Source: Azolla caroliniana
Lineage: Eukaryota > Plantae > Polypodiophyta
Assembly: GCA_043228905.1 (NCBI GenBank)
Contig: JBHGNT010000010.1
Span: 8,494,001 to 8,558,000 of the forward strand
Direction: 5' to 3'
DNA: 64,000 bases
Shown: in pieces, positions 391-41,211 of the stretch
Numbering within the stretch: the stretch's first letter is position 1
How the letters are laid out: every line of letters begins with the position of its first letter
The notes under the pieces: model-generated
What the model saw: only the letters and a program-made list of their open reading frames with translations
Told to the model about the DNA's origin: nothing
Database searches by the model: none
Position numbers and translations under genes: made by a program

Positions 391-912
391 ACTAAGATAT
401 TAAACTTACTTAGAATTAGTATATTCACTATTATTGTTTTATATGATTGACACTTGATTTTGTACGTCTTATGTAAATTTCACACCATTGCTGAAAATCT
501 TCACGACATCGTGAAGATTTCTCTCACGTTACTATGCGTTCATTCAATGAATGGGTCCTAGAAGAAAATAAAGCATTATCTGTAGTTGACATGAAAAAAG
601 AGTTTGATAGATTGTATGAACAATTAAAGCCAAAAGAAAGAAATTCTTTGTACTAAGATATTAAACTTACTTAGAATTAGTATATTCACTATTATTGTTT
701 TATATGATTGACACTTGATTTTGTACGTCTTATGTAAATTTCACACCATTGCTGAAAATCTTCACGACATCGTGAAGATTTCTCTCACGTTACTATGCGT
801 TCATTCAATGAATGGGTCCTAGAAGAAAATAAAGCATTATCTGTAGTTGACATGAAAAAAGAGTTTGATAGATTGTATGAACAATTAAATCCAAAAGAAA
901 GAAATTCTTTGT
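391..912. repeat. 261-bp direct tandem duplication (391-651 / 652-912)
   Basis: ACTAAGATATTAAACTTAC... starts at 391 and again at 652; TTTGT microhomology at the junctions. Confidence 0.9.
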
Positions 913-5649: not shown

Positions 5650-6313
5650 TGTTGGGATTACGGTCCCTCCGGATGGGATGGTCAGATGTCCGCGAAATCG
5701 GGAATGAAGACCCGAACGAGGAGTACCCGGTTCCGGAGCCGGATGATGAAGACCCGGTTCCGGATCCGGATGATGAAAACCCGGCTACGGAGCCGGATGA
5801 TGAAGACCCCGGCTACGGAGCCGGATGATGAATGTACCCGGAGCGAGATCCGGATGCGAGGACATATTTGTGAATATGTTTGCCAAGGGCCCTTGAGGCT
5901 ATATTTGTAAATAGCCCGAAAGTCATATGTGTATAAATATGACTTAGGGTAAACAGTTTTGTTGTTGTTGCTCATTTTTCTGTTTTCCACTTAGAGGGAG
6001 CGAAGTGAGAGCAGCCGAGAGAGAGAGAGCGAGAGAGAGAGAAAGGAAGAGGTCGACGCCTCTGTGTAATACTGCCGCCTGTGGCGAGGACAGCGAGCTC
6101 AAGGTCGTTGCCTTGCAGTTCGCCATTGTACATTCCCTGCGTATAGTGATAGTTGGAGTCTTGCACTCCCGTGGTTTTTCCCGTCTAGGGTTTTCCACGC
6201 TAAACCCTGTGCATTCGAGTCTCTCTCTGTGTTTTCGATTTACTGCTGCATTGATTCGTGTTTCCTCGGTTGTGGCCGAGAGGGGAAGGTTTGGAAAGCG
6301 TCAATTTCTAACA
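5650..6313 (+). mobile_element. Solo LTR of the Copia element that is full-length at 20733-26122
   Basis: TG...CA termini; CCGAC target-site duplication (5645-5649 / 6314-6318); interrupts the host RNaseH at KKQPT|IAFSSTEAEY. Confidence 0.95.
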
Positions 6314-6948
6314 CCGACCATCGCTTTTTCGAGTACGGAGGCGGAATACAAGGGTGCAACCATAGCTGCATGTGAAGCCGTATGGCTCAAGACGATTTTG
6401 AAAGATCTGGGCGTACCCATCAAGGATCCGACCTCCCTTTACTGCGACAACATGAGCAGTATCTATCTGGGTCGGAACCCGGTGTTCCACACACGGACAA
6501 AGCACATCGAAGTGCACTATCACTTCATACGAGAGCGCGTTCTAGCTGGCGATGTCGACCTACAACACATTAGCCCAAATCTTCAAGCGACCGACATCTT
6601 CACTAAAGCCTTAGGAGCCGACAAGCTGTGGCAATTCATGACCGATCTCGGATTGACGATCCCTGACTTGCCAAGCTTGAGGGGGAGTACTGAAGATATT
6701 ATGAAATATCGCGTGGATTACGCAACCACGCAACGAACCCGCGAAGAGTCGATCTACCGCGCAACGCCGCGAAGAAAGACGCAAGTCAAAGCACAACCTT
6801 CACAACTATGCACAACGCAAGCTAGAGCACGGATTCCGCAACTCCGCATAAATGCGAGTCGACGCGAGTCGACGCAGACTCCAGAATGCGAGTCGAAGCG
6901 GATTTCGGATACCGTCTAAAACCGACCAGACTTGAGCTTGAGGGGGCG

Positions 6949-7524
6949 TGTTGAGAATCAAGCTCAACTTGGTCTAGTGTGTGAACTCACCTTGAGAGTG
7001 AATAGACACTCCAACGGTCAAGAGTCACCATTAAGTCACCACTTTGTATTCTAGCATTTAGTATGAGTCATAGAATCATATTGTTGAGATATCAAGCTCA
7101 ACTAGTTTAATCTAGTTAGTCAACACATGTAACTTAGTAGTTACCTAGATCGAATCTAGTTAATATGTTGACCTTAAGCCTTTAAATAGGACCTTGTACT
7201 TCAGTGGGATATTCTAGATCCTCCACTCCTTAGTACATTTAATGTAGGACTTACACATAAGTACCTATGTTCTACCCACACATGTGCACCTTTGCACATG
7301 GGTTGTATATATACCTCATTGTGGGTATTTTTGAATGTTGATGACACTTTTCAATATAGTCAATCATCCCCCATTTATCTTCATGTTCATAAGTGTAACT
7401 TCCTCTCTCTCTCTCTCTTCCTCTCACACACTCTCACGTGCATATCATACTAATCTTCCGCTGCTTAACGTAACCATATAATTAGTCTCTAATTAACCCT
7501 AGTTAATTACCTAATTACGTAACA
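6949..7524 (+). mobile_element. 3' LTR of host Copia (copy A)
   Basis: Follows the PPT; TGTTGA...TAACA ends; right boundary inferred. Confidence 0.7.
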
Positions 7525-7770
7525 CATATTCTATGACACATAACTTATGAGCTTTCACATTCCCCATGCTCCATGAGTCTTGTAGTTAATGAAGAGAGAG
7601 GGTGACTATATAAAGCACCCTCCTCCCACCTTGTATGAGGTTGAGTCTTCTCCTTTGTTAATATACTTTTACCTTGCGTATTCTCTGTGTCTGATTCCTT
7701 GTCTCTCTCTCTCATACACACACATAACTCATATCTCTTCCACTTCACAAGAATCATATCCAATTCTTTA

Positions 7771-8180
7771 CAATCCCAAAGGTAACTATGCCATTTTTAG
7801 ACGATATTCCTATTAAGGGATGCTTAGAAAGATGAGACTATGGTTGGAAATGGTTGTAGAAAGTTTGTGATTTATCACATTAATGATTGTGAAAGTATTT
7901 TAAATAAGCTTGAGCAGGTACATTTGACACTATCAGGAACAAAGTCAAGCTTTATGAAGAACGAAGTTCTGATAGTTGGTCATATGTGTGGCTGGTATGG
8001 CAGGAAGCCTTCACCGATCAAAATTAACGCAATACAAAATATGAAGGAGGTTTGTGAATCGGTAACAAAGGTGAGAAGATTTTTAGGTGCATGTGTGTTT
8101 GATCATATTTGGTTACCACACTTTGCATATGTATCAGATCCTCTCTACCAACTTTTAAGAAAAGGGAAGAAGTTCATACG
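7771..8180 (+). pseudogene. Gypsy reverse transcriptase fragment (likely continuation of the 635-3400 element)
   Basis: IPKVTMPFLDDIPIKG (RT YxDD-type motif) followed by VRRFLG..HFAYVSDPLYQLLRKG. Confidence 0.75.
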
Positions 8181-9066
8181 ATGTACAGAGCGTTGATATA
8201 ATTTTTGAATAGAGATTCTTGTTCTCTCTCTCTATCTCTCCCACGTATTGTTAAGCTCTCCATTAAACCTGTTCTCTGTTTTCTATTTTTTTATTGCTTC
8301 CGCACGCTATTTGTTTTTACATGGTATCAGAGCGCAAGGGTTGAGAACCTTTGCAGCCAACATTCGCTTTTGCAAGAAGAAAACCTAACCTTTGTAAAGA
8401 ACAGAAGAAAAAAAAAACAATGGATAGAGGAATGGCTAGCTCGCTTCCAGTGGAGAAGCTCGACAGATCCAACTACGCATCTTGGTCATACAAGATGCAC
8501 CAGTACCTGCTTGGGCATGGTTAATGGAGCTATGTCGATGGAGTTAACGACACAGCACCTGATGCGGCACACAAGGACTTCCCGGTGTGGGAACAATCGC
8601 CAAGTAGAGTGATGTACTGCTTTGCATCCAGTGTGGGAGACCACCTGCTGAGCCACGTCCGAGATGCCAGGACGCCGAAAGAGGCTTGGGGAATACTGAA
8701 GAAGGTGTTCGCCGCAACCACCCCAGCTGGAAGCTGCAACGCCGACAAGAGTTGAGCAATGTCCGACAGAAGGACATGTCGGTGGCTGATTACACGACCC
8801 GAATCAAAGAGATCTGTGACTCGCTTGCCTCTATCAACGTCACTGTAGAGGGAGACGAGATGGTACAGGTCTGTCTTGGTTCCAAGCTTTCCAGACAGCA
8901 ATATGTACAAGGGACAATACGCCGTCATTTTTTGACTTACAGTCAATGCTCCTTGTAGAGGAGAACCACGCCGGTGCATCAACAACTACACCCACCGACA
9001 GTCGGATGTTGTACACGGAGGCGGATCGGCCCCGTGGGCGTGGTGGACGAGGCGGGTCGGCAAGGG
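8181..9066 (+). mobile_element. 5' end of a third Copia element: LTR 3' part, PBS and truncated gag (copy A)
   Basis: ...TTACA at 8321, PBS TGGTATCAGAGC 8322-8333 (initiator-Met tRNA), gag MDRGMASSLPVEKLDRSNYASW from 8420; cut off at the satellite junction. Confidence 0.85.
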
Positions 9067-9523
9067 TCGATAAACCTTCATGTTTAAGGGGTAGTGGATG
9101 AGACTAGATATCTAAACGTAAGTTGATCTCTAATTGCATCTTGATCGCAATGTTTAAGGGGGTATTGATGAGACTAGATATTAAGCGTTAATTAAATTAA
9201 TCAACTACACAACAAAAACTAAACGTAATCCTAATCTGTACTTGATAGCGAAACAATAATGCACACTGATTCGAGGTTATTGTTTATTAACTCAAAATAG
9301 GTGGAAATATACACACTCACAAGTTGCAGGAATAACTCAGTTTATAGAGTGTCAGATTGAATATCTGAATATCATACTTAGATACACCTTCATGTTTAAG
9401 GGGAAGTGGAGGAGACTAGATATCTAAACATAATGTTGACCTTTAGTTGATCCCTCAATTTTTATCCAAAGTTATTCGAGAATTTTGTTTATGAACCATA
9501 TAGACAATATTGGATAGGAAATT

Positions 9524-9528
9524 GTGGG

Positions 9529-9560
<32 letters not shown>

Positions 9561-9588
9561 GTCACGTGTTCGATCCACGTTCACCGCA
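9524..9588 (+). pseudogene. tRNA-Phe pseudogene (8-nt deletion in anticodon arm)
   Basis: CAGACTGAAG|GTCAC lacks ATCTGAAG. Confidence 0.85.
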
Positions 9589-10086
9589 AAACGTACCAAA
9601 CACTTCAGGGAGACATATTTGAATGCACATATAAACATCATATTAATGTCATCAAGTCTTGTCCTTTGGGTGACAATATGGTCATGAATAATGCTAATTC
9701 AATCTTGAGCGCAATGTTTAAGGGGAACTCGATGACACTAGATATTCTACATTAATTGAATTAATCAACTACACACACAGGACTAAACATAATCCTACTC
9801 TCTACTTGATCGCGAAAAATTGATGTACACTCATTCAAGATTTTTGATTATGGACTCAAACTAGATGGAAATATACACACTTGCAAGTTGCAAGGATAGA
9901 TTAGTTCAGAGAGCATCATATTGAATATCTGAATATCATTGTTCGATACACCTTCATGTTTAAGGGGTAGTCGATGAGACAAGATATCTAAATGTAATGT
10001 TGATCTCTAGTTGATCGCTCAACTTTAATTCACAGTTATTCGAGAATATTGTTTATGAACCATATAGACAGTATTTGATGGGATGT

Positions 10087-10159
10087 TGGGGGATAGCTCA
10101 GTTGGGAGAGCGTCAGACGAAAGATCTGAAGGTCACGTGATCGATCCACATTCACCACA
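10087..10159 (+). pseudogene. tRNA-Phe pseudogene
   Basis: Altered acceptor stem, anticodon loop (ACGAAAGA) and B box. Confidence 0.8.
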
Positions 10160-10645
10160 AAAGGCAACGAACACATTCAAAAGACACATTTGAATGCATT
10201 ATTTGACATGAAATCTACGACTAAAATGAATATATAAAAATACTGAAATGAACATATAAACATCCTGTTACTGTCGACATGCGCAATGTTTAAGGGCGAG
10301 ACGACGAGACTATATAATCAACATTCATTAAATTAATTAACTTAACATAATCCTAATCTCTACCAGATCGCGAAACTTTAATGTACATTCATTTGAGATT
10401 TTTCTTTATTAACCCAAAATAGGTGGAAATATACACACTCGCAAGTTGCAGGAATAGATTAGTTTAGAGAGCGTAAGATTGAATATCCGAATATCATTGT
10501 TCAATACACCTTCATGTTTACGGGTTAGTGGAGGAGACAAGATATCTAAACGTAATGTTGATATCTAATTGATCTTTCAACTTTAATACACTGTTATTCG
10601 GTAGTTTCGTTTGTGAACCATAGAGACAATATTTGATGGGATGTT

Positions 10646-10718
10646 GCGGGGATAGCTCAGTTGGGAGAGCATTAGACTGAAGATCTGAAGGTCACGAGTT
10701 CGATCCACGTTCACCGCA
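10646..10718 (+). tRNA. tRNA-Phe(GAA), variant with stem mismatches
   Basis: 73-nt match to consensus with 3 substitutions. Confidence 0.7.
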
Positions 10719-11251
10719 AAAGGCAACAAACACTTTCGAGAGACACATTTGCATGCATTACTTTACAAGAAATCTACGAATAAACTTTAACATATAAACA
10801 TCCTGTTAATGGCGACAAGTCTTGTTCTGTTCAGTTACAATATGGTCATGTTTCATGCAAATTACATCTGGATCGCTATGTTTAAAGGGGAATCGATGAG
10901 ACTAGATATTAAACGTTAATTGAATTAATCAACTACACAACTACAACCAAATGTAATGCTAATCTCTACTTGATAACGAAACATTAATGCACACTCAAAC
11001 AAGATTTTGGTTTACTAAGTAAAGATACGTGGAAATATACACACTCGCAAGTTGCAGGGATAGATATGTTCGGAGAGCGTCAGATTGAATATCGGAATAT
11101 CATTGTTGGATACACCTTTATGTTTAAGGGGTAGTGGATGAGACTAGATATCTAAACGTAAAGTTGATCTCTAATTGATCGTTCAACTTTAATCCACTGT
11201 AATTCGGGAATTTTGTTTGTGAAGCATAGAGACAATATTTGATGGGATGTT

Positions 11252-11324
11252 GCGGGGATAGCTCAGTTGGGAGGGCGTCAGACTGAAGATCTGAAGGCCA
11301 CGTGTTCGATCCACGTTCACCGCA
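11252..11324 (+). tRNA. tRNA-Phe(GAA), near-intact
   Basis: 2 substitutions (GAGGGCG, AGGCCAC). Confidence 0.75.
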
Positions 11325-11855
11325 AAAGGCAACAAACACTTTCGAGAGACACATTTGCAAGTATTATTATATGAGAAATCTACGAATAAACTTAACATAT
11401 AAACATCCTGTTAATGGCGACAAGTCTTGTTCTGTTCGGTTACAATGTGGTCATGTTTCATGCTAATTACATCTGGATCGCAATGTTTAAAGGGGAATCG
11501 ATCAGACTAGATATTATACGTTAATTAAATTAATCAACAACACAACTACAACCAAAACTATTCATAATCTCTACTTGATAGCGAAATATTAATGCACACT
11601 CAAACAAGATTTCCGTTTTTTAAGTAAATATAGGTGGAAATATACAGACTCGCAAATTGCAGTGATAAATATGTTCGGAGACCGTGAGATTCAATAAATG
11701 AATATCATTGTTCGATACACCTTTATGTTTAAAGGGTAGTGGATGAGACTAGATATCTAAACGTAAAGTTGATCTCTAATTGATCGTTCAACTTTAATCC
11801 ACTGTTATTCGGAAATTTTGTTTGTGAAGCATAGAGCAATATTTGATGGGATGTT

Positions 11856-11928
11856 GCGGGGATAGCTCAGTTGGGAGAGCGTCAAACTGAAGATCTGAAA
11901 GTCACGTGTTCGATCCACGTTCATCGCA
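11856..11928 (+). tRNA. tRNA-Phe(GAA), variant
   Basis: 3 substitutions. Confidence 0.65.
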
Positions 11929-12478
11929 AAAGGCAACAAACACTTTTGAGAGACACATTTGCATGCATTATTTTACAAGAAATCTACGAATAAACTTAAC
12001 ATATAAACATCCTGTTAATGGTGACAAGTGTTGTTCTGTTCGGTTACAATATGGTCATGTTTCATGCTAATTACATCTGGATCGCAATGTTTAATAGGCA
12101 ATCGATGAGATTAGATATTAAACGTTAATTGAATTAATCAATTGCACAACTACAACCAACGTAATACTAATCTCCACTTGGTAGCGCGACATTAATGTAC
12201 ACTAAAACAAGATTTTGATTTATTAAGTAAGGATAAGGGGAAATATACACACTCGCAAGTTGCAGGGATACATATGTTCGGAGAGCGTCAGATTTAGTAT
12301 ATGAATATCATTGTTTGATACACCCTTATGTTTGAGGGGTAGTGGATGAGACTAGATATCTAAACGTAAAGTAGATATCTAAATGTAAAGTTGATCTCTA
12401 ATTGATCGTTCAACTTTAATCCACTGTTATTCGGGAATTTTGTTTGTGAACCATAGAGACAATATTTGATGGGATGTT

Positions 12479-12483
12479 GCGGG

Positions 12484-12519
<36 letters not shown>

Positions 12520-12551
12520 AAAGGTCACGTGTTCGATCCACGTTCACCGCA
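12479..12551 (+). tRNA. tRNA-Phe(GAA), variant
   Basis: 1 substitution in anticodon stem (TCTAA). Confidence 0.75.
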
Positions 12552-13082
12552 AAAGACAACAAACACTTTCGAGAGACACATTTCCATGCATTCTTTTACA
12601 AGAAATCTACGAATAAACTTAACATATAAAGATCATGTTAATGGCGACAAGCCCTGTTCTATTCGGTTACAATATGGTCATGTTTCATGCTAATTACATC
12701 TTGATCGCAATGTTTAAAGGGCAATCGATGAGACTAGATATTAAATGTTAATTGAATTAATCAATTGCACAACTACAACCAAACGTAATACTAATCTCTA
12801 CTTGATAGTGAAACATTAATGTACACTAAAACAAGATTTTGATTTATTAGGTAAAGATAAGGGGAAATATACACACCTGCAAGTTGCAGGGATAGATATT
12901 TCGGAAAGCGTCGGATTGAATATCGGAATATCATTGTTGGATACACCTTTAAGTTTAAAGGGTAGTGGATGAGACTAGATATCTAAACGTAAAGTTGATC
13001 TCTAATTGATCGTTCAACTTTAATCCACTGTTATTCGGGAATTTTGTTTATGAAGCATAGAGACAATATTTGATGGGATGTT

Positions 13083-13155
13083 GCGGGGATAGCTCAGTTT
13101 GGAAAGCGTCAGACTGAAGATCTTAAGGTCACGTGTTTCATCCACGTTCACCGCA
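13083..13155 (+). pseudogene. tRNA-Phe, degenerate (B box TTTCATC)
   Basis: Several substitutions, including the D and T loops. Confidence 0.7.
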
Positions 13156-13687
13156 AAAGGCAACAAACACATTCGAGAGACACATTTGCATGCATTATTT
13201 TACGAGAAATCTACGAATAATCTTAACATATAAACATCATGTTAATGGCGACAAGTCTTGTTCTCGTCGGTTACAATCTGGTCATGTTTCATGCTAATTA
13301 CATCTATATCGCAATGTTTAAAGGGCAATCGATTAGACTAGATATTATTTGTTAATTGAATTAATCAACTGCACAACTACAACCAAACCTATTCATAATC
13401 TCTACTTGATAGGGAAATATTAATGCACACTCAAACAATATTTTTGTTTTTTAAGTAAATATAGGTGGAAATATAAAGACTCGCAAGTTGCAGTAATAGA
13501 TATGCTCGGAGACCGTGAGATTGAATATATGAATATCATTGTTGGATACACCTTTATACTTAAGGGGTAGTGGATGAGACTAGATATCTAAACGTAAAGT
13601 TGATCTCTAATTGATCGTTCAACTTTAATCCACTGTAATTCGGGAATTTTGTTTGTGAACCATAGAGACAATATTTGATGGGATTGT

Positions 13688-13760
13688 GCGGGGATAGCTC
13701 AGTTGGGAGGGCGTCAGACTGAAGATCTGAAGGCCACGTGTTCGATCCACGTTCACCGCA
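13688..13760 (+). tRNA. tRNA-Phe(GAA), near-intact
   Basis: Same 2 variants as the copy at 11252. Confidence 0.75.
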
Positions 13761-14292
13761 AAAGGCAACAAACACTTTCGAGAGACACATTTGCAAGTAT
13801 TATTCTATGAGAAATCTACGAATAAACTTAACATATAAACATCCTCTTAATGGCGACAAGTCTTGTTCTGTTCGGTTACAATGTGGTCATGTTTCATGCT
13901 AATTACATCTGGATCGCAATGTTTAAAGGGGAATCGATTAGACTAGATATTATACGTTAATTGAATTAATCAACTACACAACTACAACCAAACATAATCC
14001 TAATCTCTACTTAATAGCGAAATATTAATGCACACTCAAACAAGATTTTGGTTTTTTAAGTAAATATAGGTGGAAATATACAGACTCGCAAATTGCAGTG
14101 ATAGATATGTTCGGAGAGCGTCGTATTGAATATCAGAATATCATTGTTGGATACACCTTTATGTTTAAGGGGTAGTGGATGAGACTAGATATCTGAACGT
14201 AAAGTTGATCTCTAATTGATCATTCAAATTTAATCCACTGTTATTCGGGAATTTTGTTTGTGAACCATAGAGACAATATTTGATGGGATGTT

Positions 14293-14300
14293 GCGGGGAG

Positions 14301-14340
<40 letters not shown>

Positions 14341-14365
14341 ACGTGTTCGATCCACGTTCACCGCA
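14293..14365 (+). tRNA. tRNA-Phe(GAA), T8>G variant
   Basis: Single substitution in the A box. Confidence 0.7.
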
Positions 14366-14538
14366 AAAGGCAACAAACACTTTCGAGAGACACATTTGCA
14401 GGCATTATTTTACGAGGAATCTACGAATAAACTTAACATATAAACATATTCTCAATTGGACCGTGAAGTCGAAACAAGGAGTGCGGACGGTAGGCAATCG
14501 GTGGGTGCAATATGTAAGATGTAGAGTTATAGAGAAAA

Positions 14539-14657
14539 GGTTTAGGGTTTAGGAATTAGGGTTTGAGTTTTGGTTTAGGTTTAGGGTTAGGGTTAGGGTT
14601 TAAGAGTTAGGGTTTAGTGTTTGTTTTGGGCTTAGGGTTTAGAGGGTAAAAGGGTTT
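14539..14657 (+). repeat. Degenerate telomere-like repeats (TTTAGGG/TTAGGG mix)
   Basis: GGTTTAGGGTTTAGG...TTAGGGTTAGGGTTAGGGTTT... Confidence 0.8.
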
Positions 14658-14938
14658 ACGATTAAGTGCAAGAGGGGATAAAAGTGAAAAGAAACACCAA
14701 GAATAATTTGAGCACACCCAAATCATTTGACAAACTTGGTGTAAGTGAGGCATAATAAGAGATAGAGGAATGGGAGGGAGAGAGAGAGAGAGAGAGACGA
14801 GGGATTAATCACTAACATTATAATTAGTAACAAGGTAAAACATAACCATAAGCTAAATAGTCTAGATTAGAGAGAGGGAGAGATTAAGAAGGAGACTAAT
14901 TTTCATTAAGAAAAAGGAAAAATTACAATACGATGGGT

Positions 14939-14999
14939 AATGGTCATGAGCAAACTAATTTCGCCCCCTACGGGGCTCATCAGTGCTACCATGACCATT
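14939..14999 (-). ncRNA. Type I hammerhead ribozyme (minimal stem III)
   Basis: Minus strand: AATGGTCATG-GT-AGCA CTGATGA GCCCC-GTAG-GGGGC GAAA TTAG TT^TGCT-CATGACCATT; both core boxes, stem II and a long bulged stem I are present. Confidence 0.85.
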
Positions 15000-15701
15000 T
15001 GGGGTGGATAGGTTTATATAGGGAGTTTTCGGAGTGGCTTTAGAGAAATGACAATAGGGAGTGGGGTTGTGCTTATGGATGTGATTGAAAGGGGTGGAAA
15101 GATTTGGAGAAGAAGGAAGAGGATTTTATGGTCTTTAATGTGATAAGGGGAAGGCTTTGGTATGAGGTTATATTGTAAAAGGAGGGATAAGAAGAAAAGG
15201 GAGAGGTTAGGATATAAAATGTAAAAAGTGAGGAAATATAAGGGGCATTAAGAGAGAGGGGGAAACAAGGCTCACGTGAGATGATGAGAAGGGAAGGAGA
15301 GAGAGAGAGAGAGAATGAGTAGACATAAGGGGAGTGAGTAGATCTAGGAGGAGAGAGAGTGGGAAAACGTGAAAAAATTAAGAGAGAGCAAAAGGGGAGA
15401 GAGAGGAGAGAGATGTGTGTGTAAACTAGAAAAAGTAAGAGAGAGAAAGGAAAGAGGAGAGAGGTAAGGGAGAGAGACATGTGTGGGAAAAATAAAGGGG
15501 AAGGCTATAGATTTAGGAGGAGGAGGGGAGGGGTAGGGTAAGAAAAAGTAGAACATGGGTGAGGGTAGAAATATAAAATAGAAAGGTGGAGAAAGAGTAA
15601 AAAGAAAACGAAGGGACTTACAAAGAGGAGGCTAAGGGTTTAGAAAAAAGGAAGAGGAGGGGTAAGGTAAGCAGAAAAAAGGAAGAGGAGGGGTAAGGTT
15701 T

Positions 15702-18483
15702 AGAAAGAAATTCTTTGTACTAAGATATTAAACTTACTTAGAATTAGTATATTCACTATTATTGTTTTATATGATTGACACTTGATTTTGTACGTCTTAT
15801 GTAAATTTCACACCATTGCTGAAAATCTTCACGACATCGTGAAGATTTCTCTCACGTTACTATGCGTTCATTCAATGAATGGGTCCTAGAAGAAAAGAAA
15901 GCATTATCTGTAGTTGACATGAAAAAAGAGTTTGATAGATTGTATGAACAATTAAATCCAAAAGAAAGAAATTCTTTGTCTTGGCAAAATATGGCTTCAT
16001 TTTTGTAGGCAGTTGACAAGAGATATACAAAAGAATTGGAATTTATGCTTGAAGTACCAAATACCGAGGATGGTATAACTGCAGATTGGAATGAGGTAAC
16101 AAATGCTTTTAATAAATTTATGAAAAGAATGCAAAGGAATGGTGCAATGCTACAAATACCACATGTGGGAATCACAAATCGGCTTGAGCAAAACATTGAA
16201 GTTCAAAGACTTGGTCGAAAAACATCACACGAAATGGTCCATCAACCACAAGAAATGATCAAAACTAAGAGTGAGTCTTTGCTTGATGATTTAGTTCAAA
16301 GTATGAAAGATTAAACAATTAAAGTGGCAAAGCTTGAGAATGGTTAGAGTTCAAGGTCAAGGGAACCATTTAGACCTCGATGCATGTGGTGTGATAGTCT
16401 CAGACATTGATTCCGTGATTGTGCGGAATATAAAGACATCGAAAATCGAGACTTGGTCTATTGGAAAAATGGTAACATTTTGTTAACTGAAACTAGAAGT
16501 CCACTTACAAAGAACTTTGGTGATAGTGGTGTTAAGGTTAAGTTTGAAGAAGCTGAAGCAAAAAAGGCTTCTGCAATGTACTACTCGACAACGACAGGAA
16601 TGTGTCTTGATGACAGGCCATGTCGATCATCACTCTGGGAGAAGGTTGTAAGTTCCACACAAAAGCAAAAGCTGAAGATGGAAGACCTTCGTGTTGCCAG
16701 AGATTTTGTAAGCAAAAATATTGGATGGGATGTTCCGGTAGATGCTATGACAATCTATGCTCAGATGGCAAAACACCGAGACCATGAAGTGATAATGGAA
16801 GAAAAAAGGAAAAGTCGGATGATGAGATTGGCCTTACAAAGAAGCATTAAACAAGAGAAAGCAAAAGAAAAAAGAGATGGATGCAAAAGTCGATAAAGGT
16901 AAATCTGGTCCTTCATTCAAATTAATGTTTGATATTGAAAAGGATACAGATTAAAGAAAATTTTAGAAACAAGAATACTAGACAGTCTAGTAGAATTTAC
17001 ACTAAGAGAAGTATTAGGTATTGCAAAAAAGGAATTTCATAATGAAATAATTGATATTTGTGCGAAGACAGAAGCAAGTAAATGAGCAGGTTAAAGAGAC
17101 AAATCCGAGGGTGGATATGAAGTGGTGAGCAACGAGTCGAACAATATCATTGTTGACTCTCAGCATGCATAACCTCAATGATAAGTTCAACATATACAAG
17201 AAGGCACTACTCTCACAAATGTTGTGCAAGAGCCACTACTGAGCATCATGTGAAGATTGGAAATGTTCCAGACCCGGTGATGGCACTTATTGATCATGGT
17301 TCTGAAATAATTATAATGAGTGCTGATTTTTACAAGAAAGGTAGATGGCCAATGTATACTCAGCATGGTTGGTGAGTAAAAGCAGCCACATTAGTCAGTG
17401 AAGATTTATTTGGTGTATGCCCAAATGTAAAGGTTATTATTGGTGATATAGAGGTAGATCAACATTTCTTTGTGCAAGAAGGATCTACCTATCCAATAAT
17501 CTTGGGGCAACCATACATCGTAGAGGTTTGGATGGAGACCAAAGTCCTTGACAATGGTTCTGCCTATGCAAAGATCAGCAGCCAAGATGGACGACGAACT
17601 GAACAGTTTATAACATTTCGCCCAAATCATGAGAGGAACAAGCAAGAGCTTCGTGATCATTCGATACCAAAAGACTTTGACGATTTTAATAATTAGGTTT
17701 TTGACTAGGACTGTTGCAAATGAGGGTTGCAATAGTCCCATTATTAAAAGACCTTGATGTGGGGCATTACAACATATGAATAAGTCATTTCATGTTTCTG
17801 AAAGTGGTGCTATATGTGTGACTAGGATGTAGGAATGCAAGAGGAACTTGAAAAAGAATGCTAATTTGTTTCAACAAGCATTGAAAGGTAATGGAGTACA
17901 TGAAATGGAAGAGCAGATTCAAAGTGTTATGGAAGAAATTTCTTTTGCAAATACTATAGAAGAGTTAGAAATGTATTTGAAAGAGGATGATGAGAGTGTT
18001 AAAAAGATACATGTAAACTCAATTGATATGTAATACGAGATTGATAGGTATAATTGTAAATATGAAGAAGTAGAAAGTTTATGTAATATAAAATACAAAA
18101 CATTAGATAAAAAGGTTAAACCTGTTGCAGTACCATTACCTATTGGTAACGAAGAGAAGATGAAGGCAGCAACAACCAAGCCTATGCTTTGACTAATACA
18201 AAAGATCGGACATCACTTCACTTCGGACACAATAAATAACTTGAGAATCGGAGGGGATGAATTTCTTCTGCAATCAGATATCGCGACTTTCAAAGAAATG
18301 ATCTTTAGGCATGCGAAAACGTTTGCATTCAAATCTGAGGAGATTGGTTGTGTAGATCCAAACGTGGTGATGCCAATGGTAATATTATTATCCCTCATAT
18401 TCCTTGGAATTTTAAACCTATTGTAGTATGGAGAGCTCGATTGCTTCAGTTGTTGGAGCTGCTAAAGGATTATGTCAAGATAA
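15702..18483 (+). mobile_element. Degenerate Ty3/Gypsy gag-protease-pol remnant (copy B)
   Basis: Paralog of 635-3400. Confidence 0.7.
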
Positions 18484-21428
18484 AGGACCGACGCAGACAG
18501 CTACATTCGGCGGATGCCGATATTACGTGCTCTTCATCGACGACTTTTCTGGGCACACTTGGATCTACCCGATGCGGAAAAAGAGCGAAGTGTTCGGACA
18601 CTTCCAAAATTTTAAGAATGAAGTCGAGAAAGCCACGGGCCGACATGTACGATGCCTTCGATCGGATGGCGGCAAGGAGTACTTCTCAGACGATTTCACG
18701 GCGTATCTCCAAAAGGAAGGAACTCGGTGATAATTCACTTGCCGACACAGTCCGCAACAAAACGGAGTAGCCGAGCACAAAAATCGGCACATCCTCGAAG
18801 TAGCGTGGGCCATGATGAACGAGAAGCATATGCCCAAGTCATATTGGGCCGAAGCTGCAAATACGGCCGTCTACCTAATGAACTGGTGCACAACATCCGG
18901 CGTGCACGAGGTCACTCTGCACGAAAAATACTTCGGAAAGAAGTCGGACTTATTGCACACCTGGATATTCGGTGCAATAGCGTACGTGCACATCCCCGAC
19001 GAGAAGCGTCAAAAGCTTGACCCGAAGTCGGAGAAATGTATCCTCGTGGGATACTCACTGGAGCAAAAGGGGTACAAGTGCTACAACCCCTTAACTCGAA
19101 AATCTCGAGTAAGTCGAGACGTCGTCTTTGACGAGTCCACATCCTAGTACGCACCAGAGACAACTTCGACTCCGATGGACCTGGAATCTGCTGAACAAGA
19201 GATAGAGGATGAAGATCGCCATACGTGCATGATCGAAGAAAGTTCGATCATGACCTGACTGAGCAGACCACAAGAGCCTTTCAGCGATCAAAGCACATCA
19301 GGGCCTAGCCTGAAGATGGACAAAGGCAAGGCGAAAATGGCGGAATACGCAGACGATTGCTTTGACGACGGTGAGTAGACACACTCACTCGACAGTGAGT
19401 TCGGCGGTTTTGAGTTACCAATCAGAGCTAAGAAAGCCCTCATCTCTCCAAATGAAAAGCTTTGCCAATCCACACGTGAAAAGAACCCCGTAAGCCGATT
19501 CGGCTACAACGATTATATGGCGTACCATTACGCCTTCATGATGAAGGTAGCGACAGTACGGGAGCTGGAAACCTTTTCCGAAGCCGCGAAGGACCCGCGA
19601 TGGATCAAAGCAATGAACGAGGAGATGCAGGCACTTCGGAAGAACGAGACGTGGGATCTCGTTCCCACCTCACCACACAAAAAGGCGATTGGATGCAGAT
19701 GGATTTACAAAGTGAAGTACAACACCGACGGTTTCGTCAACCGCTACAAAGCGCGACTCGTAGCGAAAGGCTACACACAAACGCACGGAGTTGACTATGA
19801 AAAGACCTTTGCCCTGGTGGCAAAGATGACGACGGTGCAGACCGTAATTGCACTTGCCGCGGCGAAAGGGTGGCACCTCCATCAAATGGACGTCAAGAAC
19901 GCCTTTCTACAAGGTGAATTAGAAGAGGAGGTGTACATGATATAACCACCCGAGTTCAACTCGAGCACCCATCCGAAAGCTGTATGCCGACTCAAGAAGC
20001 CACTCTATGGCCTCAAGGAAGCACCGCGTGCTTGGCATTTAAAGATAACACAATATCTTCATCAAATCGGCTTCCGTATGTCAAAATCGGACAACTCCCT
20101 TTACATCCAAACCGATTCCGCAAGTCCGATCGTCATCATCTTATATGTGGATGACCTAGTCATTGGAGGTGAGCATCTCGTCGAAATCAATAAGGTCAAA
20201 TCCCTCCTTTCCGACAAGTTCGAGATGACGGACATGAAGGAGCTTTCCTCGGCATCGAGGTAATTCGGACTCCGGCCGGAATCCTAATCTCTCAACGACA
20301 CTACATCCTCAACTTGTTATACAAGTTCGGTATGGCTGAGTGCAAATCCGCGGCAACCCCGCTCGATCGCAATCTCCAACTAGATGCGAACTCCGGCACC
20401 AAAGCATGTGAGCTGACTTAGTATCGGCAACTCATTGGGAGTCTCATGTAACTCACGATCACTCGACCCGATCTCAGTTATCCGGTTGGTCTCCTTAGAC
20501 AATTCATGCAAACACCGCGTGATGCTCACTTGGATTGCGCTAAGCGAGTTCTACGATATGTGAGCGGCACAATGGAGTACAACATCCTCTACAAGACCGT
20601 GATGCCAAGACAACTCGAGGGGTACACAAACGCCGATTGGGCCGGATACAAAGACGATAGAAGGTCAACCTCCGTATTTGTTTGCTCCCTCGGCAACGGA
20701 GCAATATCCTGGAGTAGCAAAAAGCAGCCGACTGTTGGGATTACGGTCCCTCCGGATGGGATGGTCAGATGTCCGCGAAATCGGGACTGAAGACCCGAAC
20801 GAGGAGTACCCGGTTCCGGAGCCGGATGATGAAGACCCGGTTCCGGATCCGGATGATGAAGACCCCGGCTACGGAGCCGGATGATGAAGAACCTAGCTAC
20901 GGAGCCGGATGATGAATGTACCCGGAGCGAGATCCGGATGCGAGGACATATTTGTGAATATGTTTGCCAAGGGCCCTTGAGGCTATATTTGTAAATAGCC
21001 CAAAAGTCATATGTGTATAAATATGACTTAGGGTAAACAGTTTTGTTGTTGTTGCTCATTTTTCTGTTTTCCACTTAGAGGGAGCGAAGTGAGAGCAGCC
21101 GAGAGAGAGAGAGCGAGAGAGAGAGAAAGGAAGAGGTCGACACCTCTGTGTAATACCGCCGCCTGTGGCGAGGACAGTGAGCTCAAGGTCGTCGCCTTGC
21201 AGTTCGCCATTGTACATTCCCTGCGTATAGTGATAGTTGGAGTCTTGCACTCCCGTGGTTTTTCCCGTCTAGGGTTTTCCACGCTAAACCCTGTGCATTC
21301 GAGTCTCTCTCTGTGTTTTCGATTTACTGCTGCATTGATTCGTGTTTCCTCGGTTGTGGCCGAGAGGGGAAGGTTTGGAAAGCGTCAATTTCTAACAATC
21401 TGGTATCAGAGCGACTGCAGTGCAGAAA

Positions 21429-22559
21429 ATGGAAGGCGGCAGCAGCGGGCAGCCGGGGATGATAGTGCTGAATGCGCAGAACTACGCCGACTGCAAGATA
21501 AAGATGGAGGATCTGCTCATTGTTCGGGACCTGTATGAACCGATCGACAGGTCGGAAATACCCAAGGGGGTACTTGAGACGGAATGGAGGCTTCTGAACC
21601 GGAAAGCCGTTGCAACCATTCGGCAATACGTCGACGTGAGCGTTCTACAACATGTGGCGAACGACACCAACACATATGAGATGTGGCAGAAGCTGTCGGG
21701 CCTCTACGAGAGGAAGAATGCATTGAACCGGACCTCCCTGATAAGGAAGATAGTGAACCTCAAGTACCGGGACGGCGAGAGTATGGTGGAACACGTAAGC
21801 ACGTTCATGGGATTCGTGAACCAGCTTGCGGCGATCAAGTTCCCATTGGAGGATGCAATGCAAGCCATCATACTGATGTGTACATTGCCGGAAAGCTCGG
21901 AGAACTTGGTGGTGACTCTCAGCACCTCCTGCACCGAAGATAACTTGTCCCTACAAACGGTAAAGACAAGCATTTTGAACGAAGAAGCGCGTCGGAGAGA
22001 TAAAGAACCGGCCTCCGATCCGAAGATGCTGCTTGCCGAATCGGATCGGGGAAGACAACGGAACCGGAGTCCACAAAGACGGGAGAAGTCGGGGACCCGG
22101 TCGCAGTCAAGAGGAAGGCCCACATGCTTCCACTGTGGGAAGCCGGGGCACTTCCGAAAGAATTGTCGGCATTACCGAAAACACAACGGAGCCGACGACA
22201 CCGATTCGAAGAATTCTTCGGAACGGAACGGTGCTTACCGGGGAGCCACGGACCGGAATGGTTCTGATCGGCGAGGGCAGGACCGGAAAGGAACGACGGC
22301 ACTCGCGGCAAGTGAAGAGGAGATCATGCTCATCACCGAAGAAGGTGAACTAAACATTGCCGGCGACGAGACTACCTGGGTGGTCGATTCCGGAGCGTCG
22401 TTCCACCTGACCCCGGAAAGAAGATACTTCTCATCCTACACAGCCGATGAGCATGGCTGTGTTCGGATGGGAAATGAAGGTACGTGCCGGATTGCCGGCA
22501 TAGGAGACGTGTGGTTGACAACCTCGACCGGATGCAAAATGTTGCTGAAGGATGTCTGA
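21429..22559 (+). CDS. Copia gag + protease (N-terminal part of the polyprotein; premature stop)
   Basis: Zinc knuckle CFHCGKPGHFRKNC, protease WVVDSGASFH; ends LKDV* where LKDVRHVP is expected. Confidence 0.9.
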   Translation: MEGGSSGQPGMIVLNAQNYADCKIKMEDLLIVRDLYEPIDRSEIPKGVLETEWRLLNRKAVATIRQYVDVSVLQHVANDTNTYEMWQKLSGLYERKNALNRTSLIRKIVNLKYRDGESMVEHVSTFMGFVNQLAAIKFPLEDAMQAIILMCTLPESSENLVVTLSTSCTEDNLSLQTVKTSILNEEARRRDKEPASDPKMLLAESDRGRQRNRSPQRREKSGTRSQSRGRPTCFHCGKPGHFRKNCRHYRKHNGADDTDSKNSSERNGAYRGATDRNGSDRRGQDRKGTTALAASEEEIMLITEEGELNIAGDETTWVVDSGASFHLTPERRYFSSYTADEHGCVRMGNEGTCRIAGIGDVWLTTSTGCKMLLKDV

Positions 22560-22577
22560 CACGTTCCGGAGGTTCGA

Positions 22578-25502
22578 TTGAACCTGATTTCGGCCGGGAG
22601 GCTAGACGATGAAGGCTACACAGGTAGCATCCGGAACTGCGTAATGAAGTTCAGCAAGGGGAGCCTGATAGTGGCTCGGGCCCGGAAAGTCAACACACTG
22701 TACCTTATGAATGCCTGGTTGTGTCCGGAGGAGTTGAACGTGGCAGCCGACACTACCGGTGAGCTGTGGCACAAGAGACTGTGCCACATGAGTGAGAAGG
22801 GGATGAAGAGGCTTGCAGAAGACAACCTTATTCCAGTGAAGCATGTGCACCTGGAGAAGTGCACCGACTGCTTGGCCGGTAAGCAGAACCGAACCTCCTT
22901 CCACTCAAGGCCACCGACGAGACGTAGCGCACCATTGGAGTTGGTGCACACTGACGTGTATCAAGTAGAAACGAAGTCACATGGCGGAGCCCAGTACTTC
23001 GTGACATTCATTGATGACCACAGCCAGAAGCTGTGGACGACACCGTTGAAGACAAAGGACCAAGTGTTGTGCGTCTTCAAAGAACTCCACGCGAGAGTGG
23101 AAAGGGAATCCGGCAAGAAGCTGAAAGCGATACGAGCGGATAACGGAGGGGAATACCGGGGGCAGTTCGAGGAGTACTGTCGCTCGAAGGGAATCCGGCT
23201 CGAGTTTACTGTGCCGAAGACGCCGGAACTGAACGGGCTGGCTGAGAGGATGAACCGGACCATAATGGAGAGGGTCCGGAGTATGCTGGCGCATGCGAAA
23301 TTACCCAAGGGGTTTTGGGCTGAGGCAATGTCGACGGCGACATACGTGATAAACAGATCACCCTCAGTACCTTTGGACGGAGACACGCCGCAGAGAGTGT
23401 GGACCGGTAGGGAAGTATCCTACCGGCATCTGAAGGTGTTCGGGTGTCTCGCATATGTGCATGTGGCAAAGGACCGGAGAGGAAAGCTAGATCCAAAGAC
23501 CCGGCCATGCATATTCCTCGGTTACGGCAATGACGAGTTCGGCTACCGAGTATGGGACCCGGTCGACAAAAAGATATTCCGGAGTCGTGATATCATCTTC
23601 ATGGAGGACAAGACACTCGCCGACTGGGAGTCGGAGAAGAAGATGAAGAGCTCCAAGTCGACCGGTGAGGATCAACTCTACGAGGAGCTGTCCCGACCGG
23701 CAAGGGACCGGTTAGCACTCGAGGATCCGGCCGAAGATGGTGAAGAAACAGAACCGGCCGAGGAAGATGAAACTGATACCGGAACCGGCCCCGATCCCGA
23801 AATGGATTCGGATGAAGAGGAAACGGAGGAGCCGGTTACCGAAGCTCCGGAACGGAGATATCCTCTAAGAGAGAGAAGGGCCCCCCGGAGATTTCCGGAA
23901 CCAGAGCACGTGCTGCTAACCGACGAGGGGGAGCCGGAGAGTTTTGAAGAAGCAAAGCTTGACACCCATAGCCGCAGGTGGTTAAGTGCCATGCAGGAGG
24001 AGATGGATTCCCTGCATGAGAACCACACATATGAACTTGTTGAGTTGCCGAAAGGAAAGCGGGCACTTCGAAACAAGTGGGTGTTCAAGCTGAAACCGGG
24101 AGATGCCGAAAACCCCCCGAGATACAAAGCCAGGATCGTGGTGAAGGGGTTCCAGCAGAAGAAGGGCGTCGACTTCGACGAGATATTTGCCCCGGTAGTG
24201 AAGATGACCTCCATCCGGACGGTGCTGAGCATAGCGGCAAGCATGGACCTCGAGGTAGAACAGATGGACGTGAAGACGGCATTCCTTCACGGTGACCTCG
24301 AAGAAGAGATCTACATGCAGCAACCGGAAGGATTCGAGAAGAAAGGGAAGGAGCACCTGGTATGCCGGTTGAAGAAGAGCCTTTACGGACTGAAGCAGGC
24401 TCCCCGGCAATGGTACTGGAAGTTCGACTCTTTCATGACCGACGAAGGGTACCACAAAACGCAGTCCGATCACTGCGTGTTTGTGAAGAAGTTCAAAGGA
24501 GGAGACTCTCTAATACTCCTCCTGTACGTGGACGACATGTTGATCGTCGGACGGGACCAGGTCAAGGTACGGATGCTGAAGAAAGCGCTTCACCGAACCT
24601 TCTCAATGAAGGACCTGGGTCCGGCGAGGCAAATACTAGGGATGCACATCATCCGGGACCGGAAGAAGAAGCAATTGTGGCTGTCACAGGAGAAGTACGT
24701 GACAAAGGTGCTTCACCGGTTCAACATGTCGGAAGCAAGACCGGTCGGGTCAACTCTCCCGGCCAACTGCAAGTTGTCCAGCAAGCAAAGCCCCAAGACA
24801 AAGGCTGAAAAGGAGGACATGATGAAAGTACCATATGCCTCTGCCATCGGAAGCTTGATGTACGCAATGGTGTGTACAAGACCGGACATAGGATATGCAG
24901 TCGGAGTGGTGAGCCGGTACATGAGCAATCCCGGCAAAGAGCACTGGAACGCTGCCAAGTGGATACTCCGATACCTGAAGGGCACGGCAAACGTGTGCCT
25001 CCGATTCGGCTCCGGTAAGCCCGAACTCGACGGCTTTACCGATTCGGATATGTCCGCTGATGCAGATACCAGCCGGTCCACATCAGGGTATGTGATGACG
25101 TATGCAGGGGGAGCTGTTTCGTGGCAGTCGAGGCTGCAGAAGACGGTTGCGTTGTCAACCACGGAGGCGGAGTACATGGCGGCTGTTGAAGCCGGCAAGG
25201 AAATAATATGGATGAAGGACTTCATTAGAGAGCTCGGTATCCGGCAGGAGGAGTACCGACTCTACTGCGACAGTCAGAGTGCCATCCACCTTGCGAAGAA
25301 CGCGGCCTATCACTCCCGGACGAAGCACATCCAGCGAAGATATCACTGGATCCGGGAAAGGATAGAAGACCAGGAGTTCGTGCTGACGAAGATCCACACG
25401 GACGAGAACGGGTCAGATATGCTGACCAAAGTGCTCACACCCGACAAGCTGGAAGCGTGCCGGAAGAGGGTCGGACTGGAAAGACATCCCATGCCGAAGT
25501 GA
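22578..25502 (+). CDS. Copia pol (GAG-pre-integrase, integrase, RT, RNaseH), in frame with gag
   Basis: LWHKRLCH, VHTD..FIDD..RADNGGEY..NGLAERMN, YKARIVVKG, LYVDDML, ALSTTEAEY, HSRTKHI. Confidence 0.95.
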   Translation: MNLISAGRLDDEGYTGSIRNCVMKFSKGSLIVARARKVNTLYLMNAWLCPEELNVAADTTGELWHKRLCHMSEKGMKRLAEDNLIPVKHVHLEKCTDCLAGKQNRTSFHSRPPTRRSAPLELVHTDVYQVETKSHGGAQYFVTFIDDHSQKLWTTPLKTKDQVLCVFKELHARVERESGKKLKAIRADNGGEYRGQFEEYCRSKGIRLEFTVPKTPELNGLAERMNRTIMERVRSMLAHAKLPKGFWAEAMSTATYVINRSPSVPLDGDTPQRVWTGREVSYRHLKVFGCLAYVHVAKDRRGKLDPKTRPCIFLGYGNDEFGYRVWDPVDKKIFRSRDIIFMEDKTLADWESEKKMKSSKSTGEDQLYEELSRPARDRLALEDPAEDGEETEPAEEDETDTGTGPDPEMDSDEEETEEPVTEAPERRYPLRERRAPRRFPEPEHVLLTDEGEPESFEEAKLDTHSRRWLSAMQEEMDSLHENHTYELVELPKGKRALRNKWVFKLKPGDAENPPRYKARIVVKGFQQKKGVDFDEIFAPVVKMTSIRTVLSIAASMDLEVEQMDVKTAFLHGDLEEEIYMQQPEGFEKKGKEHLVCRLKKSLYGLKQAPRQWYWKFDSFMTDEGYHKTQSDHCVFVKKFKGGDSLILLLYVDDMLIVGRDQVKVRMLKKALHRTFSMKDLGPARQILGMHIIRDRKKKQLWLSQEKYVTKVLHRFNMSEARPVGSTLPANCKLSSKQSPKTKAEKEDMMKVPYASAIGSLMYAMVCTRPDIGYAVGVVSRYMSNPGKEHWNAAKWILRYLKGTANVCLRFGSGKPELDGFTDSDMSADADTSRSTSGYVMTYAGGAVSWQSRLQKTVALSTTEAEYMAAVEAGKEIIWMKDFIRELGIRQEEYRLYCDSQSAIHLAKNAAYHSRTKHIQRRYHWIRERIEDQEFVLTKIHTDENGSDMLTKVLTPDKLEACRKRVGLERHPMPK

Positions 25503-38414: not shown

Positions 38415-38946
38415 AAAGGCAACAAACACTTTTGAGAGACACATTTGCATGCATTCTTTTACGAGGAATCTACGAATAAACTTAACATATAAACATCCTC
38501 TTAATGGGGACAAGTCTTGTTCCGTTCGGTTACAATCTGGTCATGTTTCATGCTAATTACATCTAGATCGCAATGTTTAAAGGGCAATCGATGCGACTAG
38601 ATATTAAACGTTAATTGAATTAATCAACTACACAACTACAACCAAACATAATCCTAATCTCTACTTGATAGCGAAATATTAATGCACACTCAAACAAGAT
38701 TTTGGTTTATTAAGTAAAGATACGTGGTAATATACACACTGACAAGTTGCAGGGATAGATATATTCGGAGAGCGTCGGATTGAATACCGGAATATCATTG
38801 TTGGATACACCTTTATGTTTAAGGGGTAGTGGATGAGACAAGATATCTAAACGTAAATTTGATCTCTAATTGATCGTTCAACCTCAATCCACTGTTATTC
38901 GGGAATTTTGTTTGTGAACCATAGAGTCAATATTTCATGGGATGTT

Positions 38947-38951
38947 GCGGG

Positions 38952-38994
<43 letters not shown>

Positions 38995-39019
38995 ACGTGT
39001 TCAATCCACGTTCACCGCA
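38947..39019 (+). tRNA. tRNA-Phe(GAA), TTCAATC variant
   Basis: Same single G57>A as 36527. Confidence 0.88.
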
Positions 39020-39551: not shown

Positions 39552-39556
39552 GCGGG

Positions 39557-39599
<43 letters not shown>

Positions 39600-39624
39600 A
39601 CGTGTTCGATCCACGTTCACCGCA
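39552..39624 (+). tRNA. tRNA-Phe(GAA), perfect
   Basis: Identical to consensus. Confidence 0.92.
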
Positions 39625-40156: not shown

Positions 40157-40161
40157 GCGGG

Positions 40162-40204
<43 letters not shown>

Positions 40205-40229
40205 ACGTGTTCGATCCACGTTCACCGCA
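40157..40229 (+). tRNA. tRNA-Phe(GAA), perfect
   Basis: Identical to consensus. Confidence 0.92.
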
Positions 40230-40681: not shown

Positions 40682-40692
40682 GCGGGGATAGT

Positions 40693-40729
<37 letters not shown>

Positions 40730-41206: not shown

Positions 41207-41211
41207 GCGGG

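Follow-up and report, generated by a model that had tools for sequence, protein, structure and literature searches.

Hammerhead ribozymes of type I whose helix III is weak and palindromic count as a trait of metazoans and of Penelope-like elements, whereas the hammerheads of plants are mainly of type III and belong to LTR retrozymes. Plant LTR retrozymes carry type III hammerheads in LTRs of ~350 bp, together with a tRNA-Met primer-binding site, a polypurine tract and 4-bp target duplications (PMC4918200). Penelope-like elements bear hammerheads in their pseudo-LTRs (PMC4209133, PMC8557442), and animal retrozymes have been argued to be non-autonomous derivatives of such elements (bioRxiv 10.64898/2026.07.22.740005; PMC7761336). 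The canonical metazoan type I hammerhead has a helix III of 1-2 bp with a palindromic loop of 2-4 nt and is active as a dimer, while motifs without any helix III nucleotides are called min-HHR (PMC4209133). Type I motifs have also been reported from pseudo-LTRs that belong to Penelope-like elements in Selaginella moellendorffii (Cervera and de la Pena 2014, PMC4209133), where 111 motifs and four tandem units of 757-994 nt were counted (PMC4918200, Additional file 1, 2016), and from Chlamydomonas, in units of ~2000 nt (PMC4918200, Additional file 1). A preliminary description of the locus treated here had set the type III hammerheads of plant LTR retrozymes against the type I motifs of Penelope-like elements and non-LTR retrozymes; type I motifs are, however, already known in a plant, Selaginella (PMC4209133, PMC4918200).

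The locus lies in a window of 64,000 nt (the whole stretch of DNA that was analysed), in which a motif-bearing repeat occurs twice, at 14444-15361 and 32326-33254, the two being ~96% identical. In the first of these, copy A, the minus strand reads AATGGTCATG GT AGCA CTGATGA GCCCC GTAG GGGGC GAAA TTAG TT TGCT CATGACCATT from 14999 to 14939, letter for letter as first described, and the parts claimed for it are all present: both catalytic boxes, a 5-bp helix II with a tetraloop, a 14-bp bulged helix I and a near-palindromic helix III (Table 1). The topology is that of type I, with helices I and II flanking the core, helix I open-ended and the G10.1-C11.1 pair closing helix II. Helix I of copy A consists of four proximal pairs (AGCA/UGCU), the GU bulge and ten distal pairs. 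The core (C3 U4 G5 A6 N7 G8 A9, G12 A13 A14, the A15.1-U16.1 pair and H17) is complete, and it is invariant in 12 family sequences. Re-examination of the letters predicts the cleavage site that had been proposed, after GUU between 14953 and 14952. H17 is U, which makes a cleavage triplet that is allowed under the NUH rule but slow.

Table 1. Positions of the element and its parts in the window, with the related loci and the sequence types of the family.
Feature	Positions	Strand	Basis or remark
Element copy A	14444..15713	-	5'-truncated, ~1270 nt of ~1820-nt unit
Element copy B	32326..33254	-	5'-truncated, 929 nt, ~96% identical to copy A; same 3' end
Start of second, downstream unit, head-to-tail with copy B	31750..32325	-	L017 1-1038 matches 33168-32191
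Type I hammerhead motif, copy A	14939..14999	-	Sequence, descriptor, fold, alignment
Hammerhead motif, copy B	32822..32882	-	Identical to copy A; sequence match
Helix I 5' strand, copy A	14999-14990 and 14987-14984	-	
GU bulge in helix I 5' strand, copy A	14989-14988	-	
A2.1, copy A	14984	-	
CUGAUGA (C3-A9), copy A	14983-14977	-	
Helix II GCCCC/GGGGC, copy A	14976-14972 with 14967-14963	-	G10.1-C11.1 closing pair
Loop II GUAG, copy A	14971-14968	-	
GAAA (G12 A13 A14 A15.1), copy A	14962-14959	-	
AUUAGU near-palindrome (A-UUAG-U), copy A	14959-14954	-	
U16.1 and U17, copy A	14954-14953	-	
Predicted cleavage site, copy A	14953/14952	-	U1.1 at 14952 pairs with A2.1
Helix I 3' strand, copy A	14952-14939	-	
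TATATAAA box	15013..15020	-	14 nt upstream of hammerhead; invariant in all subfamilies
Degenerate C-strand telomere-like block	14538..14642	-	(CCCTAAA)-like, ~16 units, 71% matches
Conserved 3' tail	14444..14537	-	~95 nt, all four subfamilies, end GAA(T/C)ATG(T); raised contig depth
Related loci (n = 10)			L002, L006, L007, L012, L013, L017, L031, L034, L035, L038; ENA assemblies ERZ1034377-ERZ1034427; BLAST
Sequence type V1			Window copies A and B, L012; helix I 5' strand AAUGGUCAUG-GU-AGCA; helix III AUUAGU (window), ACUAGU (L012)
Sequence type V2			L002, L006, L013, L017, L035; helix I 5' strand AAUGGUCAU-UUU-AGCA; 3' strand starts UGCC
Sequence type V3			L007; helix I 5' strand AAAGGCCAC-UU-AGCA; 3' strand UGCU-CGUGGCCAUU; loop II AUAG
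Sequence type V4			L031, L034, L038; helix I 5' strand as V3; loop II AUA

A relaxed hammerhead descriptor, which demanded the two boxes, a U-H, no fewer than 4 bp in each of helices I and II and a loop II no longer than 10 nt, returned only two sites from the window, copies A and B. Its chance rate in dinucleotide-shuffled windows averaged 0.02 matches, with any match at all in 4 of 200, and chance origin is negligible once the ten extra distal pairs of helix I are counted. A search with the Rfam hammerhead models, which the preliminary description had suggested as a check, gave no match at the gathering threshold, where the window yielded tRNAs only. In a permissive scan of 251 nt around the motif the sole meaningful match was to Hammerhead_3 (18.8 bits against a cutoff of 48.5), and when the window copy and its relatives were compared with Rfam, hammerhead families alone matched, at 19-26 bits against cutoffs of 48.5-52. 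The best type I alignment, of HH9 to L007, has type I topology and scores 26.1 bits (E = 0.008), below gathering.

The stretch containing the motif folds far better than its shuffles (z = -7.2). At minimum energy, however, the window copy takes the form not of the active fold but of an inactive rod in which CUGAUG is paired with AUUAGU (-34.6 against -27.7 kcal/mol for a hammerhead-like fold); the rod is thus favoured by 7 kcal/mol in the window copy, and by 3 kcal/mol in L012. Comparably stable alternative folds are likewise predicted for viroid hammerheads. In cis, helix III has 2 bp (A15.1-U16.1 and C/U15.2-G16.2) around a loop of only 2 nt and is therefore unable to close. In all relatives the segment ACUAGU is a perfect palindrome that could give a 6-bp intermolecular helix III, and the U15.2 of the window copies (AUUAGU) would place two G-U pairs in the same dimer helix. 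When two molecules of L007 or L031 were cofolded with the hammerhead core kept unpaired, the intermolecular ACUAGU helix III formed together with helices I and II. Since each locus seen has one intact hammerhead, the partner must be supplied in trans. Every type has, 3-4 bp away from the core, an internal loop that is asymmetric and contains a U that never changes. In type I hammerheads a contact with loop II is expected at such a helix I internal loop, and by analogy we infer that this is where it would be made here. The motif had been called a minimal type I hammerhead; the type and the short palindromic helix III stand, but the adjective is slightly off, because the min-HHR of PMC4209133 has no helix III nucleotides, and 'canonical metazoan-like' is the better term.

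The element that carries the motif is non-coding and interrupts a tRNA array, as had been claimed, the 605-bp tRNA-Phe array being broken at 14444-14447. Copies A and B end on the same final base of the minus strand (...GAGAATATGT), and the sequence beyond it differs. The 3' end of copy A abuts the array with a 4-nt microhomology (ACAT/ATGT) at 14444-14447; intact array units read ...CATATAAACATCCTC... at the break point, so that ACAT is common to element and target. In the 5' direction copy A extends to ~15713, with L012 94.5% identical to it (E coordinates 32-1066) and unbroken across 15361/15362, a point that Logan contigs likewise bridge. There copy A abuts a very high-copy repeat beginning at 15714. 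The terminus of this repeat (TTTGTACTAAGATATT...) is found from 15714 onward and also at 386 and 647, has many different flanks in the DNA runs, and reaches contig depths of 2400-9900, against 50-800 for the hammerhead element. The second unit that follows copy B aligns over its first ~135 nt to the 5' region of a subfamily 2 unit and breaks off within a tRNA-Phe gene at 31749/31750. Because a segmental duplication of ~11-16 kb (635-11912 vs 15702-31750, 98-99% identical) surrounds both copies, they cannot be called independent insertions. We rejected 15362-15701 and 31750-32325 as LTR-like repeats, since their similarity is only of low complexity and the relatives show ordinary unit parts.

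The tandem array contains more than 40 tRNA-Phe(GAA) genes with a 605-bp period (9232-14447, 29067-31750, 33250-46765 and 57360-63983) and includes inverted units (43952-45234), decayed units and two genes with an AAA anticodon (46572-46644, 58466-58540). Within the second copy of the segmental duplication, 21420-25502 is occupied by a copia element whose gag and pol frames (21420-22559, 22578-25502) are open; its tRNA-Met primer-binding site is at 21401-21412. A P-type PPR gene without introns (642 aa) occupies 54303-56231 of the minus strand; its best match is a Pteridium aquilinum transcript (50% identity), with angiosperm and Marchantia matches at no more than 30%. This fern match, the one pointer to the lineage of the host, makes Selaginella an improbable host; protein searches with the PPR and copia sequences turned up no close relative with a name, and a water fern would be no more than a guess.

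Relatives were sought in metagenome contigs. A pattern requiring the helix I and helix III flanks of the window gave no matches in these contigs, and could not have matched the relatives, because they carry C15.2. A pattern fixing only CUGAUGA, helix II and GAAA gave 63 loci, 10 of them homologous to the element over 0.4-1.1 kb; the other 53 were set aside as unrelated hammerheads with a longer helix III, mostly type II-like microbial motifs. Together with the window, the 10 related loci form four subfamilies that are 65-94% identical overall. Each sample holds one V1/V2-type and one V3/V4-type element, which indicates two lineages coexisting in at least two related hosts. The family is also multi-copy, helix I variants included, in Logan contigs from the DNA runs of two organisms (A and B). 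In both, these contigs show the V2-type changes (14989, 14990 C>A), and the V3-type 5' strand turns up in them as a loose end, so the window's own species appears to have all lineages. On the minus strand of L013 (L013:216-277), ~1.1 kb from the intact hammerhead, there is a decayed one that belongs to a further subfamily and in which helices I and II are disrupted, and thus different family members sit side by side.

When the subfamilies are compared, conservation peaks at the ribozyme core. Around the motif L012 and L007 are 65% identical (462/712 aligned columns), whereas only one of the 39 positions from AGCA to UGCU differs, and that one is located in loop II; a binomial estimate for this degree of conservation is ~1e-6. 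The mean pairwise identity of the core, 0.95, is the maximum over ±320 nt in a sliding window of 30 columns. That the core is intact across lineages that have drifted to ~65-72% identity argues that the ribozyme is needed for propagation. Two distal pairs of helix I change from U-A to C-G on both sides between V1/V2 and V3/V4. A covariance model (R1), built from the family alignment and the hammerhead structure, matched the two window copies, the ten loci and the decayed copy in L013 (29 bits), and nothing else. The model-based alignment places standard pairs in 88.5% of cells, against 34-44% when the partners are slid by 1-3 columns, and four pairs change on both sides, a number reached by 8 of 500 shuffles; these figures are based on 4-5 distinct sequence types (seven distinct alignment rows) in an alignment fitted to the structure. 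Helix II never varies across the family and is uninformative on covariation. The preliminary description would have been contradicted by copies lacking conservation or covariation of the core; the metagenome contigs instead gave a conserved core and compensatory changes in helix I.

A complete unit is found in L035 (2135-3954, ~1820 nt). It comprises, in order, a 5' region of ~630 nt, a CT-rich region, the TATATAAA box, the hammerhead, ~300 nt, the (CCCTAAA)-like block and the 95-nt tail, which here ends in GAACATG; the hammerhead lies ~1220 nt from the 5' end. The tail is a candidate recognition and priming module for a reverse transcriptase. The telomere-like block occurs in subfamilies 1 and 2 and is missing from subfamilies 3 and 4 (V3, V4), and is therefore not essential to the family. 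The TATA-like TATATAAA box, whose equivalent in copy B is at 32896-32903 on the minus strand, is invariant although its flanks diverge, and may act as an internal promoter. Transcription starting 25-35 nt downstream of the box would begin within the 5' strand of helix I. A palindrome, CATGACCATATGGTCA, is present in the subfamily 2 tail (L035:2090-2125, L017:870-905), the halves of which match both strands of distal helix I; subfamilies 3 and 4 have no match of this type to helix I.

Upstream of the L035 unit there is a short partial copy made up of the telomere-like block and the tail (2013-2140 matches 3838-3966, 93%), and the same layout of partial copy plus unit is seen in L002 and L006, each with a different flank. 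All three partial copies begin in the telomere-like block. Head-to-tail unit junctions occur in L017, in L031 (a self-repeat with a period of 1777) and at copy B of the window. These arrangements (L035, L002, L006 and copy B) are the pseudo-LTR partial tandems and 5' truncation characteristic of Penelope-like elements. The 3' end of the family abuts three unrelated flanks, namely the tRNA-Phe array of copy A, the tRNA-His side of L012 and the flank of L035. In L012 (1332-2393) 115 nt separate the end of the element from a downstream tRNA-His(GTG) gene (1456-1530), which sits in a 920-bp repeat (1332-1473 matches 2252-2393). L012 is a second example of a family member among tandem tRNA genes, which may reflect a target preference.

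No ORF of the element or its relatives contains a Pfam domain, and the longest element ORF in the window (15073-15480, minus strand) represents the CT-rich region, with a translation of low complexity. The element has no long internal direct repeats, no poly(A) and no tRNA-Met primer-binding site, matches to the latter lying only outside it. An ORF for a Penelope-type reverse transcriptase was seen neither in the window nor in the fetched relative loci. A search of sequencing runs, in which matching runs were read as assembled contigs, found no RNA run containing the element; run X17, guessed to be RNA, has four low-depth contigs, all below 95% identity and one of them across the motif, which proves nothing. 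In L038 an L1-type LINE (1963-8104) lies directly downstream of the hammerhead unit on the same strand; its ORF1 has 601 aa, and its ORF2, of 1444 aa, combines endonuclease, RVT_1 and zf-RVT domains and recurs unchanged in ENA assembly ERZ27227290.

The copies have a fixed 3' end, are truncated to different extents at the 5' end, form partial tandems resembling LTRs, show microhomology at an AT-rich target, lack coding sequence and carry a type I hammerhead; together this argues for a non-autonomous, target-primed retroelement. Its partial tandems and its type of hammerhead suggest a Penelope-like element in particular. The ribozyme-bearing, non-autonomous retroelement family that had been proposed from the one locus is thus supported by multiple loci with different flanks, a defined 3' end, 5' truncation, partial tandems, no Pfam-matching ORF and a preserved core, all read from sequence. 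We consider it probable that the motif is a selectively maintained type I hammerhead within a ~1.8-kb non-coding, Penelope-like or retrozyme-like retroelement family of a non-seed land plant, its catalysis and its mobilisation both being predictions. Element RNA would fold helix I (3-4 bp, the internal loop, then 9-10 bp) and the 5-bp helix II. As helix III cannot close in cis, the palindromic A(C/U)UAGU segments of two copies would be expected to base-pair with each other as a 6-bp helix III, and the resulting double hammerhead would cleave at the predicted site. Target-primed reverse transcription starting from the conserved 3' tail would generate new copies, with a reverse transcriptase whose gene lies outside the element. 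The enzyme most likely to mobilise the element would be a Penelope-like one, given the 5'-truncated partial tandems, the absence of poly(A) and of a primer-binding site, and the microhomology at an AT-rich target. The two copies in the window would be truncated insertions in the tRNA-Phe array.

The same features can be read differently. In a true non-LTR retrozyme, tandem transcripts would be cut to ~1.8-kb units, ligated into circular RNAs and copied by rolling-circle reverse transcription, and the head-to-tail junctions of L017, L031 (period 1777) and copy B could be products of such a cycle. A type I hammerhead with a palindromic helix III is the hallmark of animal retrozymes (PMC7761336), and the tandem type I units of Selaginella (757-994 nt) and Chlamydomonas (~2000 nt) have been tabulated as putative retrozymes (PMC4918200, Additional file 1). 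However, the unit boundary is fixed at the end of the tail, ~510 nt downstream of the cleavage site, at several independent loci, which argues for a linear template with a defined 3' end. Among the loci seen, no contig has a second intact hammerhead from the same family, the unit exceeds those of animal retrozymes 5-10 times in length, and the element was in no RNA run. One contig of run X7 contains a joint (14950, TG, 14447) that could be taken for a head-to-tail junction 2 nt from the cleavage site; we rejected it, as it is probably a split alignment (a mapping artefact), the subfamily 2 tail CATGACCATATGGTCA resembling both strands of helix I. On this evidence we regard a circular-RNA cycle as unlikely. 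We give still less credence to a telomeric element of the Athena or Coprina type, whose C-strand telomeric block would anneal to G-overhangs and of which the present copies would be internalised relics. Such an origin would account for the presence of the hammerhead and the (CCCTAAA)-like block on one strand, as in Athena and Coprina (PMC8557442), and for upstream partial copies that begin in the block (L035, L002, L006), but subfamilies 3 and 4 have hammerhead and tail without it, and where present it lies within the unit, separated from the 3' end by 95 nt and from the hammerhead by ~310 nt. The copies seen are inserted into tRNA arrays or at other non-terminal sites; no telomere array occurs in the window, and neither the 3'-end telomeric repeats nor the location at chromosome termini that mark Athena and Coprina were found.

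It is very improbable, finally, that the motif is an inactive relic or a chance match which travels with a repeat, or with a SINE-like element that an L1-type LINE mobilises. The sub-threshold Rfam scores, the LINE adjoining the unit in L038 and the lack of the element in RNA runs would be in keeping with this, but only 0.02 matches are expected per window even with the relaxed descriptor, lineages of only 65-72% identity have the same invariant core, and there are compensatory changes in helix I. The element is without poly(A), and by BLAST the L038 LINE has no sequence in common with it outside the unit.

A more ambitious reading, which we put forward only tentatively, is that this is an active, dimer-dependent, retrozyme-like type I hammerhead family of a fern-grade plant, with at least two lineages that predate the split of three related species, a conserved TATA promoter of its own just upstream of the ribozyme and a preference for tandem tRNA arrays (tRNA-Phe in the window, tRNA-His in L012). 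If this more ambitious reading is true, the family would offer a plant system for testing the role of Penelope-type hammerheads. With a defined unit, a 3' module and a conserved TATA-like box, the family makes that role approachable in a plant; for one Penelope-like element in vitro, hammerhead cleavage needed the protein and was dispensable for insertion (PMC11167929).

Identity with the plant LTR retrozymes is excluded by the type I topology and by the lack of LTRs, primer-binding site, polypurine tract and 4-bp duplication, although these elements (Cervera et al. 2016, PMC4918200) are likewise non-autonomous, non-coding and hammerhead-bearing and of ~1 kb scale. Athena, Coprina and Terminon, the endonuclease-deficient Penelope-like elements (PMC8557442), resemble subfamilies 1 and 2 in combining a hammerhead with reverse-complement telomeric repeats on one strand; here, in contrast, the telomere-like block is dispensable, internal and degenerate, the location is internal and there is no reverse transcriptase ORF. 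With the metazoan type I hammerheads and non-LTR retrozymes (newt satellite 2, Schistosoma Sm-alpha, HH9; PMC7761336) the family shares the helix I internal loop near the core, the shortness of helix II, a predicted helix III of only 1-2 bp whose palindromic loop would make cleavage depend on a dimer, and tandem non-coding units. It differs from metazoan retrozymes, which have units of 150-400 nt, in its plant host, its 1.8-kb unit, its fixed linear 3' end and a U at H17. The nearest published parallel is that of the Selaginella elements, which are also from a non-seed land plant and have type I topology, metazoan-like architecture and Penelope-like partial-tandem structure; compared by their descriptions, the window element differs from them in having no ORF, a unit of ~1.8 kb and a helix III too short for closure in cis. 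As the type I hammerheads of Selaginella Penelope elements were published in 2014 and 2016, our finding is not a new kind of system but extends those observations, making this family the second non-seed-plant lineage, beside Selaginella, with type I hammerheads.
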